A stretch of DNA of 64,000 nucleotides from Piromyces finnis finn (GCA_002104945.1 MCFH01000006.1:124001-188000); one strand, 5' to 3'. Positions 1,620 to 61,021 are shown, counted from the first letter of the stretch. The notes: generated by a model from the letters alone, not told the origin. Numbers and translations: made by a program.

Positions 1620-1752
1620 AGGAGTGTTTAGGCTGAAAATTCAGTATGGCAAACCAGAAGGTCATGACCACATAGATATAGGAAATAGGCAACATTTTTA
1701 TAAAAACCACTATTAGGATTATTCTAATAAATGGGAAAGATGAACTCAGTAA
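1620..1752 (+). mobile_element. Decayed 3'-end copy of the SINE-like element at 57453-57947
   Basis: gctgaaaattcagtatggcaaaccagaaggtcatgaccac...caacattttt...aaccactatt...aaatgggaaagatgaactcag aligns colinearly with 57802-57922. Confidence 0.8.
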
Positions 1753-23896: not shown

Positions 23897-24012
23897 GCTG
23901 AAGATTCAGTATGGAAAACCAGTAGGGTTAAACTACCCAACTAGTAATAAAAAATAGTCAACATTTCTATATGAACCACTAATTAGGATTATTCTATTAA
24001 ATGGGAGAAATA
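23897..24012 (+). mobile_element. Decayed 3'-end copy of the SINE-like element
   Basis: gctgaagattcagtatggaaaaccagtagggtt...caacatttct...gaaccact...aaatgggagaaat aligns with 57802-57913. Confidence 0.8.
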
Positions 24013-45784: not shown

Positions 45785-45939
45785 ATTTAAAATGATTTAC
45801 ATTACACCCTGGCGAGATAAATATTATTATGATGATAGTAAATTAGAATTATTAATACCTACCTTAAATATAATAACCCAACCTATAGCAAACCTTTGTG
45901 AAGAAAATATATGAGTACTAACAATTATTGGGCCGAACC
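45785..45939 (-). mobile_element. Decayed 5'-end copy of the SINE-like element (reverse strand)
   Basis: Reverse complement ttcggccc...gttagtac...attttcttcacaaaggtttgctataggttgggttattatatttaaggtaggtatt...ttctaatttacta...gccagggtgtaatgta aligns with ~57452-57615. Confidence 0.8.
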
Positions 45940-45991
45940 AAATAAATATAAATCAGGTATTTATTTATAGTTCTCTACAAAAATAATAATA

Positions 45992-46126
<135 letters not shown>

Positions 46127-46896: not shown

Positions 46897-47045
46897 AAAA
46901 TATCGTTCAGTGATGAGTATATAGTGTATATGGTTTAAAGAACATCTAAGCTGAGGATACAATATAACAGACCACTTAGAAATAGAAATTAATCAATCAG
47001 CATTTCTCTTAAAAAAATCCACTATTAGAATTAAACTTCTATTCG
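46897..47045 (+). mobile_element. Decayed 3'-half copy of the SINE-like element with an internal deletion
   Basis: aaaatatcgttcag...gtgtatatggtttaaagaacatctaagctgaggatacaatataacagaccacttagaaatag...cagcatttctct...ccactatt aligns with ~57746-57900; the gacc-aggag-ggtc hairpin region is deleted between acc microhomologies. Confidence 0.7.
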
Positions 47046-55900: not shown

Positions 55901-57452
55901 TATTAAAAAAATAAAAGTTTTGCTTTTTAATAAAATTAATTAAATGATTTTTTTAATTATTATGAAAATTGATTTGTTTTAGAAAAAATTAATCAATAAA
56001 TTAATTTATTCCAAAGCTTAATTAATATTAAAATAAATTTTAAATGTTTGATGAATCATATTGGCATTTAATGTTGGGTTGATTTTTTTAATATTGATGA
56101 GATAAAAAATACTAGATTTTTGGAAATTTAAGCCAGGTTTTTTGGCAAGGAAAGTTTGATATTAACCAGACTATATATCAGAAAATTTTAAATTTTTTTC
56201 TTATTTTTTTAGGAAAAAATTTAGTAATTATATTAATTCATTAGAAAAGTATAAACTTTTAATTTTTATGAATAATAATAGTGCATCAATAACAATGGCA
56301 TGGATACAATAACTTAATGTTAACTATTGATACTATAAAAAAAATAATAGTAATTTACATTCTAATAATATCAAATAAAGAAAAAAATAAATAACTTTGT
56401 TTTAACTTTTTTCTCTTTTTTATTTATTTTTGTTTCATATGTTTCTATTAAAAAAAAATTATCTTTATTATTTTATATAAAAATAAAAATTCATAACAAA
56501 GTACAGTAAGTACATTAACATATTAAATTATATTAAATTTATTATTTTCTGCAATAGCTATTCTTTTACTTTAATGCATTCAAAAAAAAAAGTATAGAAA
56601 TATTATCTTTAAATATAGAAAAAGTATTTTAGTTTTTATTTCAATTCATTATTTGTTGTTGTTGTTGCTGTTACTTTTATTGGTATTTAAAATTGTAGTA
56701 AAAAAAAAAAGTCAAATATATTTCTATTAAAAAGAAAAAAAAAATTAAACTTTTTAATATGAAACTTTAATAAATAGAATAACATCAAAAGTAAAACACT
56801 ATTTTATTCTATTATAAAAGAAAAGAAAAAGTAAATGATTAAAAAAAAAGTTTTTTTTGTTAAAATAGTATTATTAAAAATATATGTATAACATTCATAT
56901 ATAAATGTTATTTGTTGATATGTTTTGTTTTGTATATATGGCATTAAACATTTCTTTTAAAAAGAATAATTAACATTAATTGTACCTTTAAAATTTTTTA
57001 CTTTTTTTTTTTATAAATATAAATTATAATAATTTACATGAACCAATAAAATATTTATTAAATTTTAATTAAATATTTTGAGTACAAACTTTATTTTATA
57101 ATAATATGTATAAAAAAAAATAAAAAGATAAAATCAATAAATTAAAAAAAAAAAATAGATTTAATAAAAATTTATTTGAATCAACTATAATATAAATATA
57201 AATAAAAATTTATATATAATTAAATAATATTTATTATATAGTAATTTTAAAATTTAATAGGTGCATCTCTAATTATGTAATTATGAATAATAACTACAAA
57301 TAATAAAAAAAAAAGGTACATGCAAAAAAAGCATTTTACATTATTTTACATTTTAATAATCGATATAGAATATAAAGAAAAAAAAAAATTAAATAATAAA
57401 AAAATTTAAATCAAATTATAACTATTTTTAAATGAATAATGGTATTAGTAAT

Positions 57453-57947
57453 TCGACCCCGCAGATGTCAGTGCCTGTGGATTTTCCCACTGGGTTTGCC
57501 ATGGGTTGGGTTATGATATTCAGGTAAGTATAAATGAACTTTCTAATTTACTACTATGATAATAACACTCGTCTAGCCGGCCTGAGAGGGTCTAGTGTAC
57601 ATGGTACATTCCAAATTAGAACTTAATAAGTGGTGACTTAGGCTATGCCAAAAACACATAATATTCCTTAATCAATTTAAGTGTAAACATTAGGGGGCGG
57701 TTGACACGTGATCAAATTGACTATAAGAGGCTTAGCATTATAGTTGTGAAATATCGTACAACGACATGCATCTAATGTACATGGATTAAGTGAGCGTCGA
57801 AGCTGAAGAAACAGTATGACAGACCAGGAGGGTCACAACCACCTAGCAATAGGAATGAGCCAACGTTTCTCTAAGAACCACCATTGGAGCTAACTCTGAT
57901 CGATGGGAGAAATGCACTCGGAAGTTAAAAAAAAAAAAAAAAAAAAA
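57453..57947 (+). mobile_element. Intact non-autonomous non-LTR retroposon (SINE-like): 474-bp structured body plus A21 tail, with 12-bp TSD
   Basis: Exact direct repeat ggtattagtaat at 57441-57452 and 57948-57959; poly(A) 57927-57947; sharp GC-rich island in very AT-rich flanks; no ORF; four decayed homologues in the window. Confidence 0.88.
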
Positions 57948-59310
57948 GGTATTAGTAATCATGTTATTAGTAATAATTAAATAGTCAACAAGAATAAAAA
58001 GTATTCACGTTTTGTTAGACTATGGAATATTTATATATATATTAGAGAAAAAACTAAAATATAAAATAAATAGAGATATTTTTCCATTATTTTATTATTT
58101 TAATTTCTTAGATATAAATTATTAAAACTTTTATGTATATATATATGTATATATATATATATTGTATAATTACATATACTAAATATACTTTAAAGAAAAA
58201 ACAATTACAAAAATGACATGGAAAAATGAAAAGATTTATTAGTTTTTTATTATTTTTTTTTATTATAATTATAATTTTAAAATAAAAGAAAAAAAAAATA
58301 AAGTTTATTTTTTTTTTCTTTTTCTTTTCTTTATTTTTAATATTGATATTAGTATTGGTATTGGTATTTATTAGTATTATTTAGATATTGTTAATTTAAT
58401 ATTTTATTTTGTATTTAATAGTTGTTATTTATTATTTAGAATTTTTTTTTTCTCTCTTTTCCTTTTTTTTCATTATCTTTTTTTATCCATAGCTATGAAA
58501 GATTAAAAAAAAATATTCTTTTTTTTTTTTTCATTTATTGGTTGACTAACTATATTATAATGCTAAAATAAACCTCTAACTTACAAGAATTATCTAACCT
58601 ATAAACCATGAGGTGGATGAACTCGTTTTTATTTATTATAATTAATAGTATCATTTATATTTTTTTTTTCATCCTATAAATGAAATGATCAGAACTATTA
58701 TTAATTACTGCTATTGAAATTGCTTGAAACTATTCTAAACAATAAATTGGTAATATAAGATTTGTAAAATACAATAAACATTATAAATGAATGGGATTTT
58801 TTGTTATTATTATTAAAAGATAAAAAAAAAAAAAAAGTATATTTAATATTTAATATAGAATATATATATTAAATATTAAATATACTTTTTTTTTATTATT
58901 TTAAATTGTTTTTTTTTTTTTTTTTTTTATTTTGTTTTGTTGTTGTTGTTGTTGTTTTGAAAAAAAAATAAGAAAAGAAAAAAAGAAAGAAAAAATATCG
59001 ACATAATATAAAAAGAAAACAGATAAAATACAATACTTTCTTTTTCTTCTTCTTTGCCTATAATTTCAATAAATTTGATAGGTTACTTGTTGACTTCTTA
59101 TCAACCATTAATAGAAATGAAATTATATATGTTTTAATGGGGTGATATTGAAATAAAATAAAAAAAAAAAACCTTGCATCAAAATAATAGTATTAGACTG
59201 ATATTATAAATATTTGATTTCATATATAAATTGATTCGTGTTTAAGTTGATATCAAGTTGTTGTTGTTTTTTCCTCTTACTTTTATTCCATTTATATTAT
59301 TATTACATGA

Positions 59311-61021
59311 TTATGGAGATGGTGGTGGAAGTTCAAGTCTTGGTATAATAATTGAATTATTAATTTTTGGTGAGGTAGATTTTTCGAGTTCTGGAGTTCG
59401 GGGAGGACGTTCAATGATTGAAGATGGTTGAAGTTCTTTTTGAGATAATATTGGACTTTGAAGACTTGGTGTGCCAGGACGACTACCTGTAAACTGTATG
59501 TAAGGTGAACTAGGACTATGAAGGTTTGGAGTACCTGGACGACTACCTGTATATTGTAAATAAGGAGAATTTGAGTTTTGCATATTTGGAGAAGCATATT
59601 CTAATATTGGGGTTGTTCTTGGTGGTCGTTCAACTAAAGATACAGAATAATCTCTACGTGAAGATGGGTAATCTACAACAGAAGAAATTCCGCATTCATT
59701 CTTAATTGAAGAACCTGGATTATCTAAATAGGGTGAAATCGGAATTTCAAGTGGGATATTGTAATCACTGGAAAGTTCATTGGTTGATTGGCTATAAATA
59801 GATGCTGTATGTGGTCTTATATTCATTGAACTTGATGAATTAGCCATATTACTTGTACTTCCCAAAAGATTTACATTACTACCACTTGGATAATCAATTG
59901 GAGTTAATGGTAATGGTTGTGGTGTACGAATAGATTTATTACCTGAACTTTGACTCTTTGGAAGGCTAGCATTACCACCGGTGTGACTTGGTGGACGTAA
60001 TGAGTTTTGACTTTCTGAATGACTATTATTATTATACATTTGCTCTTGCTTTAAAACAGCTTGTTCAATTTTTTCTTTCGTTTTAATATCTTTAATAGCA
60101 ATGGATGAAAAGAATAATCCGATAATAGTGAAAACTAATGCTGTTGATGAACCCATAATAATAGCAAAATGACTAGGTTCATATTCAATTAAACGTTTGT
60201 TTTCTATAGCTGACTTATAATGGCAACATTCATCACTATAATTATTACAATACTCTGTTTTATCTGAATTATTTCGATAACCTAATAAGTATATAAAATA
60301 TATATTATTTTATTATTATCATTATTCAAATAATATATAGGTATATATTAAAAATATTATAATAAGAAAACTTACCACAATTAACAATTTCTTCATTATA
60401 AGGATCATAACAATCTTGATCTTCATCTATATCTGAAAAATATATATCTGACAAATCAGTTAAATATTGATCTCTAGCATTGTTTATATCTTTCTTATCA
60501 CCTAAAGAAATCATTTCCTTATTTTGGGGATAAGGGCAAACTGTTTCATTTTTCAAGAAATAAAATGCGGCATTGTAATAATTAGCAAAATTACTTTTGC
60601 ATAATGCTTTTAATTTACTTTTTGATTCCTCTGTAAGAAATTGCTTATACATATAATAACAATTTGCAGTTTTTATATATCTGAAATCTATTGTTTGAGT
60701 ATTGTCTGTAACATTATAAATCTTTAAATAATTATCAAAACTCTTTTCTGCTAATTCAATATTATCATAGTAGCATAAACCTCTTGCTATATGTAAATAT
60801 CTGATATAATAATCTAATCTAGCACCTTCTTGAGGAATTTCCTTTTCAAAATTTGATAAAAGATATTGTTCAGACGTTAATCTATCTATTTTATCTTTAT
60901 CAAAATATAATTCTGTGTTATTATATTGACTGCAATACCAAGATGAAACTTTTACCGTTTCTGAAGCCAAAGATAATAAAATTGATATTAAATTAATGAA
61001 TAAAATTATGAAAAATTTCAT
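59311..61021 (-). CDS. Type I single-pass membrane protein (signal peptide, Cys-rich ectodomain, TM, S/P-rich tail); exons 60376..61021 and 59311..60281 (~538 aa)
   Basis: The two ORF-track ORFs join in phase via a TGTG|GTAAGT...TTAG|GTTAT intron: MKFFIILFINLISILLSLA...EEIVNC-G-YRNNSDKTEYCNNYSDECCHY...FAIIMGSSTALVFTIIGLFFSSIAI... Confidence 0.8.

Follow-up and report, generated by a model that had tools for sequence, protein, structure and literature searches.

Analysis of a 64,000-nucleotide (nt) stretch of the genome of the gut fungus Piromyces finnis finn (GCA_002104945.1 MCFH01000006.1:124001-188000, here C189:124001-188000 and hereafter the window) revealed an insertion island at positions 57441-57959. 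With high confidence, we interpret this island as one recent insertion of a short non-coding retroposon that depends on a long interspersed element (LINE), that is, a short interspersed element (SINE) in the working sense of the term, with a full unit of 535 nt. The copy in the window is a very young, 5′-truncated and probably inert member of an abundant SINE-like family. An earlier note on the window had described a 474-nt GC-rich body, a tail of 21 adenines (A21) and an exact 12-bp target-site duplication (TSD), and all of these are present in the sequence:

57441-57452 (+): left TSD, ggtattagtaat, an exact 12-nt match to the right flank
57453-57926 (+): retroposon body of 474 nt, equal to unit nt 62-535 without the 61-nt head, as found by comparison of copies
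57453-57460 (+): 3′ remnant of box B, TCGACCCC, left where the truncation cut the motif GGTTCGACCCC (unit nt 59-69)
57927-57947 (+): poly(A) tail, pure A21, read from the sequence
57948-57959 (+): right TSD, ggtattagtaat, an exact match to the left TSD

The body contains 35–42% G+C, against 8–14% in the flanks, in a genome that is 84% A+T. Given the base frequencies measured in the flanks (A 0.415, T 0.42, C 0.084, G 0.082), two fixed positions would share an exact 12-nt sequence by chance with a probability of ~5 × 10−6. The duplication can be read as 11–12 bp, as the last T of its left copy could equally be element nt 61, and the truncated 5′ junction thus shows a 1-nt microhomology. The copy starts at unit nt 62, which indicates that the reverse transcript was either left unfinished or joined early at this microhomology. 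Its body is identical to those of two other copies (L001 and L003), and differs from those of 27 others at a single position, nt 349, where it has A and they have G.

The 474-nt body was used to search the whole genome (56.46 Mb, 232 contigs). The search gave 850 first-look candidates, and the 40 matches that were scored were all ~100% identical and all 474 nt long. Thirty loci, the window copy itself (L002) among them, were fetched and compared. In 26 of the 30, the similarity ran exactly 61 nt further on the 5′ side to a common start, GTCGTTCCAG..., beyond which the flanks of the copies were unrelated. The family unit is therefore 535 nt, and the word 'intact' in the earlier note does not apply to the window copy, which begins at nt 62 and has lost its head. 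Two other fetched copies, L016 and L028, are truncated elsewhere, at ~nt 19 and ~nt 12.

Copies were then counted from both ends of the unit across the whole genome, allowing up to two mismatches. The 3′ 30-mer followed by A5 was found in 284 copies and the 5′ 30-mer in 206, with none for the reversed control in either case, and for each 30-mer at least 100 copies matched exactly. The element is not single-copy, and 206 heads against 284 3′ ends indicate that ~73% of copies are full-length. A 5′ start common to this proportion of copies is what a SINE-like element shows when its RNA has a defined 5′ end; a LINE tail would have random ends. One body site varied among the 30 best copies (nt 349, with the minor A in the window copy, L001 and L003), and their mean pairwise difference was 0.19 per 474 nt in a sample biased towards the best matches. 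No coding capacity was found in the unit, the longest ATG-initiated open reading frame (ORF) being 37 amino acids (aa) and the longest open frame 52 codons. The proposal of a multi-copy, very young, non-coding family with poly(A) tails is borne out by the count of 284 3′ ends and by the TSDs that flank 26 of the 30 fetched copies. At G000:C150:542411-542550 (−), two 30-nt head starts lie 110 nt apart, with no matching 3′ end listed nearby; this pair may be a tandem or rearranged head.

Poly(A) tails of variable length and TSDs are left behind when a LINE with both endonuclease and reverse transcriptase (RT) inserts a copy by target-primed reverse transcription. In those 26 copies, TSDs of 10–16 bp lay directly at the element ends. 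In L030 the duplication was set 19 nt from the element 5′ end, no TSD was found at L014, L017 or L027, and the matches at L019 and L021 were unconvincing. Tails in the fetched copies were pure and ranged from A8 to A132 (median 31). The first base differed in four copies, and the 5′ junction carried one extra base in two and 19 extra bases in L030. Extra or altered bases at the 5′ junction are usual for LINE-mediated insertions. Tail, TSD and near-identical copies all agree with the earlier suggestion of a recent insertion by this route.

An empty site, which the earlier note had proposed as a check, was found in paralogous form. L030 (G000:C13:748811-752284) contains, at 1420-2030, a full-length copy within the C-terminal coding region of a copy of LINE family B, described below. 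A LINE B paralogue at L027 reads through this insertion site, with the TSD sequence present once. Locus L027 (G000:C24:485060-488533) also carries, at 1470-2040, a full-length copy without a TSD, between the 3′ part of a LINE B ORF and the endonuclease region of another LINE (33% aa identity); the junction may reflect a rearrangement, an endonuclease-independent event or recombination. The unusually long pure A132 tail belongs to L016 (G000:C68:92214-95687), which has a fragment of LINE B some hundreds of bases downstream. A preference in target site was considered and rejected: a T precedes the TSD in 19 of 25 copies, but the way in which tail and TSD are delimited rules out A at this position, and the count then equals what is expected.

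The head that the window copy lacks contains, at nt 59–69, the exact box-B consensus GGTTCGANNCC, for which ~0.001 occurrences are expected per element; elsewhere, this sequence occurred once in 355 kb, both strands counted. A box-A-like stretch lies ~44 nt upstream of box B and, by eye, matches at six of nine specified positions. The first 91 nt fold better than shuffled sequences (z = −3.7), with nt 1–10 paired with 57–66 and an inner hairpin at ~nt 24–44. A metagenome scan with a 20-mer from the head identified contig L077 (Ga0138317_1043819), which carries a homologous element. Its head is 88% identical to that of the unit, the block GATTTTTCCCA and the splice-site-like block AGGTAAGTATAA are kept, and the rest is ~55–60% identical. 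A change of UU to GA at nt 5–6 makes the terminal stem in L077 a perfect 10 bp, and one G–C pair of the inner hairpin is flipped to C–G, such that the comparison backs stems 1–10/57–66 and 26–40. An 'anticodon-like' alternative hairpin, seen by eye, was rejected as it is not kept in L077. The stems that the comparison backs do not make up a cloverleaf.

Nt 38–69 may be collinear with tRNA-Ala(AGC). A 32-place pattern designed for genuine tRNA-Ala(AGC) genes found none of that form in the genome; its 21 matches were all variants of the head, from related SINE families. The same 21 variants are the closest matches in the genome to the L077 head, and several families in the genome share the head. 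We infer that the head serves these elements as a conserved promoter and 5′ structure, and that it is probably read by RNA polymerase III (Pol III). The earlier note had recognised no tRNA, 5S or 7SL head. This stands as far as recognisable homology is concerned, but not for the family head, which is absent from the window copy and has the exact box B; no Pol III head was found at first because the copy then read has no head. Starting inside box B with the head lost, the window copy is very probably dead on arrival and, if the head is the promoter, would be unable to seed new copies.

The L077 element bears on an alternative explanation, in which the copies are processed pseudogenes derived from a cellular non-coding RNA with a function of its own, whose conserved source gene is present in gut fungi and whose retroposition is a by-product. 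The L077 element (640-1294, −) is located downstream of a 5S rRNA gene, at a distance of 17 nt, and converges on a SNF7-like gene. The element may have inserted near a Pol III gene or may represent a source locus, and its conserved head and internal blocks, its position and its lack of a visible poly(A) would suit the latter, as would the well-folding head and an ideal 5′ splice-site-like block kept between the family and L077. The 5S gene, which served as a positive case for Rfam (107 bits), is 100% identical to 5S genes of the P. finnis genome. A conserved master locus beside a 5S gene was nevertheless rejected, as no locus in the P. finnis genome joins a 5S gene to the head. The body, moreover, is only ~55–60% conserved in L077 while several families in the genome share the head, a pattern that SINE turnover would explain more readily than a conserved gene would. 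In addition, the L077 element has an unclear 3′ end, which runs into the convergent gene. As an observation on the 5S genes themselves, three identical copies at G000:C153:5379, 13913 and 22447 (−) have a spacing of exactly 8534 bp, which suggests that they lie within a tandem repeat unit, perhaps rDNA.

Structure and homology searches argue against a cellular RNA as well. No Rfam family matched any part of the element, with nothing relevant in the window region and body or in the full 535-nt unit, and the proposed check for a known structured RNA was thus negative. The global fold was no better than that of dinucleotide shuffles, for either the 535-nt unit (z = 0.06) or the 474-nt window body (z = +0.70). 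The adjective 'structured' in the earlier note can accordingly be kept for the family head and a two-hairpin module, described below, and not for the whole body; structural support is confined to these two parts. The splice-site-like block belongs to the following feature:

57524-57576 (+): AT-rich intron-like stretch (GTAAGTAT...TCTAG) with CAG directly before it, from the sequence and the L077 comparison

Here an 11-nt ideal 5′ splice-site sequence, CAGGTAAGTAT, stands before an AT-rich stretch with TAG at its end. Spliced copies without this stretch were not found in the genome. As every copy in the genome keeps it, the RNA that was copied was not spliced there. Taken together, an origin from a cellular non-coding RNA gene seems improbable.

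The LINE-dependent SINE favoured here would need a partner, and L1-like LINEs that encode both an APE endonuclease and an RT domain are present in the genome. Among solved structures, human L1 ORF2p is their closest relative (E = 5 × 10−34), ahead of R2 proteins (5 × 10−19). Two families were distinguished:

LINE family A: ORF of 1478 aa, ~40 copies, 92–100% aa identity over a 207-aa probe
LINE family B: ORF of ~1512 aa, >100 copies with the ORF open in many, RT region 71% identical to that of A at the aa level

L030 and L015 include the 3′ end of LINE B, in which the end of the ORF is followed by a 260-nt AT-rich untranslated region (UTR) and then ...GCCGTT(A)n, and both the SINE and LINE B are poly(A)-tailed. 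The two are similar over 53 nt, at 85% identity. In the window copy, the shared region with its two hairpins is placed as follows:

57792-57841 (+): segment, unit nt 401-450, 85% identical to the last codons of L1-like LINE B
57802-57815 (+): hairpin 1 of the shared module, GCUG-AAGAAA-CAGU, 96% of cells paired
57822-57834 (+): hairpin 2 of the shared module, GACC-AGGAG-GGUC, with compensatory changes

Hairpin 2 reads GGCC/GGCC in the LINE and AACC/GGUU in an old relic in the window, both variants being compensatory. By eye it reads GGAC/GUCC in L077, where it stands one column out of register in the pair-count alignment. Over the whole module, 87.5% of cells were paired, compared with 18–38% when the partners were slid, and three of the eight pairs change on both sides. 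A metagenome scan with the LINE/SINE module pattern gave no matches. The earlier note had proposed a search for a LINE sharing the 3′ ~130 nt; a 53-nt segment of LINE B answers to this, and the rest of the tail is unlike. Because SINE nt 401–450 carry the module of its last codons, family B is the most likely source of the enzyme. On balance, the sequence comparison leans towards family B as the driver, with the module and the poly(A) as the handle.

The same resemblance could be read in another way, in which the window element would be a 5′-truncated autonomous LINE of which only the 3′ end is left, the 5′ ends of such copies being random. The window copy is itself 5′-truncated, the 53-nt stretch resembles a LINE ORF end, and the window contains AT-decayed relics of only the 3′ 120 nt. 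Random 5′ ends are excluded, however, by the start at one nucleotide in 206 of 284 copies, with nothing common upstream and no copy extending past nt 1. In the 10 kb upstream of five copies, nothing was common except the element itself, which argues that the element is not a truncated LINE end. LINE B ends in a different 260-nt 3′ UTR, the 5′ region of LINE A has no similarity to the element, and matches to the 3′ 30-mer on low-numbered contigs included none at predicted LINE A or B ends. We therefore give this reading very little weight.

A perfect TSD and a pure tail do flank exactly 474 nt, and the copy at C112:1238092 starts at the same base, as would be expected if the 474-nt body were the complete, intact unit of an active SINE. 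These two are, however, the only copies genome-wide that start at nt 62, against 206 with the full head, and chance alone would give two such coincident ends among ~78 truncated copies over 535 positions; the likelihood of a 474-nt unit is negligible. For the same reason, that only two copies start there, a hotspot of RT-stalling truncation at nt 62, in the head stem, was rejected. The near-perfect identity among copies might point to an assembly artefact or a collapsed repeat, for which there is scarcely any room, as every copy has its own flanks, TSD and tail length.

The family thus shows a short non-coding unit, dispersed copies with a common 5′ end, an A-tail with TSDs, and a LINE partner with a shared module, as expected of a SINE; what the window copy lacks is full length with the head. 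In the mechanism that we propose, the family head would act as an internal promoter through box B at nt 59–69, the box-A-like stretch and stem 1–10/57–66. A resident L1-like LINE, most likely family B, would supply the enzyme in trans, and the two-hairpin module and poly(A) would probably let the LINE protein pick up the SINE RNA. Target-primed reverse transcription would then insert the copy, having stopped or been joined early, at unit nt 62, in the case of the window copy.

Several observations weigh against this account. Pol III transcription of the family is putative, and a T5 run at nt 11–15 and a T4 run at nt 91–94 are possible Pol III terminators. Rfam matched no tRNA, 5S or 7SL in the 90-nt head alone (tRNA model searched to E ≤ 10). 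ARAGORN was blank on the head at default and at 80% thresholds, and at 70% thresholds it gave a poor cloverleaf alongside obviously spurious ones. The covariation sample is small, at seven sequences. The proposed LINE link is limited to one 53-nt segment, and the rest of the LINE B 3′ UTR (~260 nt, AT-rich) is unlike the SINE tail. The module lies ~85 nt from the poly(A) of the SINE and ~300 nt from that of the LINE, and is non-terminal in both. Finally, the comparison of 3′ ends covers LINE B, and LINE A is still a candidate partner.

A broader proposal is advanced tentatively, and we think it rather doubtful. The 61–72-nt head may represent a new class of SINE head, not of tRNA, 5S or 7SL type, stem-enclosed with a box B and present in several families and in another gut fungus, on SINEs that would be recruited by an L1-like LINE via an internal module at the end of its coding sequence. 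If true, a fungal L1-like element would recognise its SINE RNA stringently, at a non-terminal site.

Older traces of the element were also found. In the window, 1632-1747 (+), 23897-24011 (+) and 46898-47040 (+) are old, AT-decayed relics of its 3′ ~120 nt, at 70–74% identity. All three include the two-hairpin module and testify to earlier rounds of spread, either of the family itself or of its LINE-tail relatives. An old relic at 45811-45945 (−) corresponds to unit nt 102–187 (78% over 87 nt). By eye, its homology runs 5′ to a box-B-like GGTTCGGCCC and 3′ past the splice-site-like block, and it adjoins a long (TTA)n microsatellite at ~45990-46125. At another locus, L070 (G000:C196:173042-176377), an old 199-nt copy at 2434-2632 (86% identity) lies inside the 5′ region of LINE A, and its differences mostly look like C-to-T transitions. 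A second SINE family at L070 was considered and rejected, the sequence being instead antisense LINE A 5′ sequence plus this old copy; the L070 variant tail had one occurrence in the genome, with one intermediate at three mismatches.

Insertion of the window copy took place in AT-rich intergenic DNA, ~1.35 kb from the nearest ORFs. These are at 59311-60156 (−), for a 281-aa Ser/Pro-rich protein, and at 60326-61021 (−), for a 231-aa protein with a signal-peptide-like start. For this intergenic, dead and truncated copy, no effect is evident.

The statement that no SINE had been described from gut fungi agrees with our literature search, in which no paper on SINEs of Neocallimastigomycota, Piromyces or gut fungi was found; a survey of transposable elements in 625 fungal genomes does not mention Neocallimastigomycota. 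The family is of an ordinary mobile-DNA kind, and its mechanism is ordinary. Its presence means that a SINE–LINE system with hundreds of virtually identical copies is active, or was until very recently, in an anaerobic gut fungus. Gut-fungus genomes are extremely AT-rich and hard to annotate, and annotation should treat GC-rich islands of this kind as repeats and mask them, so that they are not mistaken for genes or structured RNAs. The family also provides a small system in which to ask how an L1-like LINE chooses its template, by a shared hairpin module or by poly(A), and its insertions are potential polymorphic markers for strain typing.

'Stringent' pairs of SINEs and L1-clade LINEs with a common 3′ stem-loop and poly(A) are known from plants and green algae, for example from the plant ZmSINE2 group and from Chlamydomonas, as SINEX-3_CR and L1-1_CR (PMC3747384). 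The Piromyces family resembles them as a short non-coding poly(A) retroposon with TSDs, a stem-loop from a resident L1-like LINE, and a partner with APE plus RT. It differs in that the module lies not in the terminal ~80 nt but in the last codons of the LINE, and in that the sequence from module to tail is unshared. With Alu and B1, mobilised by mammalian L1 under 'relaxed' poly(A) recognition, it has in common the poly(A), TSDs of 10–16 bp, variable tails, an L1-like driver, and 5′ truncation with microhomology. Unlike Alu, its head is not 7SL-derived, and its unit is 535 nt, monomeric and equipped with a LINE-derived module that Alu does not have. Among fungal elements, Mg-SINE of Magnaporthe is a SINE of ~470 bp. 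AfuSINE2 and AfuSINE3 are SINE families of Aspergillus fumigatus (PMC5063351). Like these three, the Piromyces element is a short non-autonomous fungal retroposon with TSDs, and in size it is near Mg-SINE. Their heads, however, are recognisably related to tRNA or 5S, whereas the Piromyces head is unrecognised by the Rfam tRNA and 5S models, and its host, unlike Aspergillus and Magnaporthe, is an early-diverging anaerobic gut fungus.

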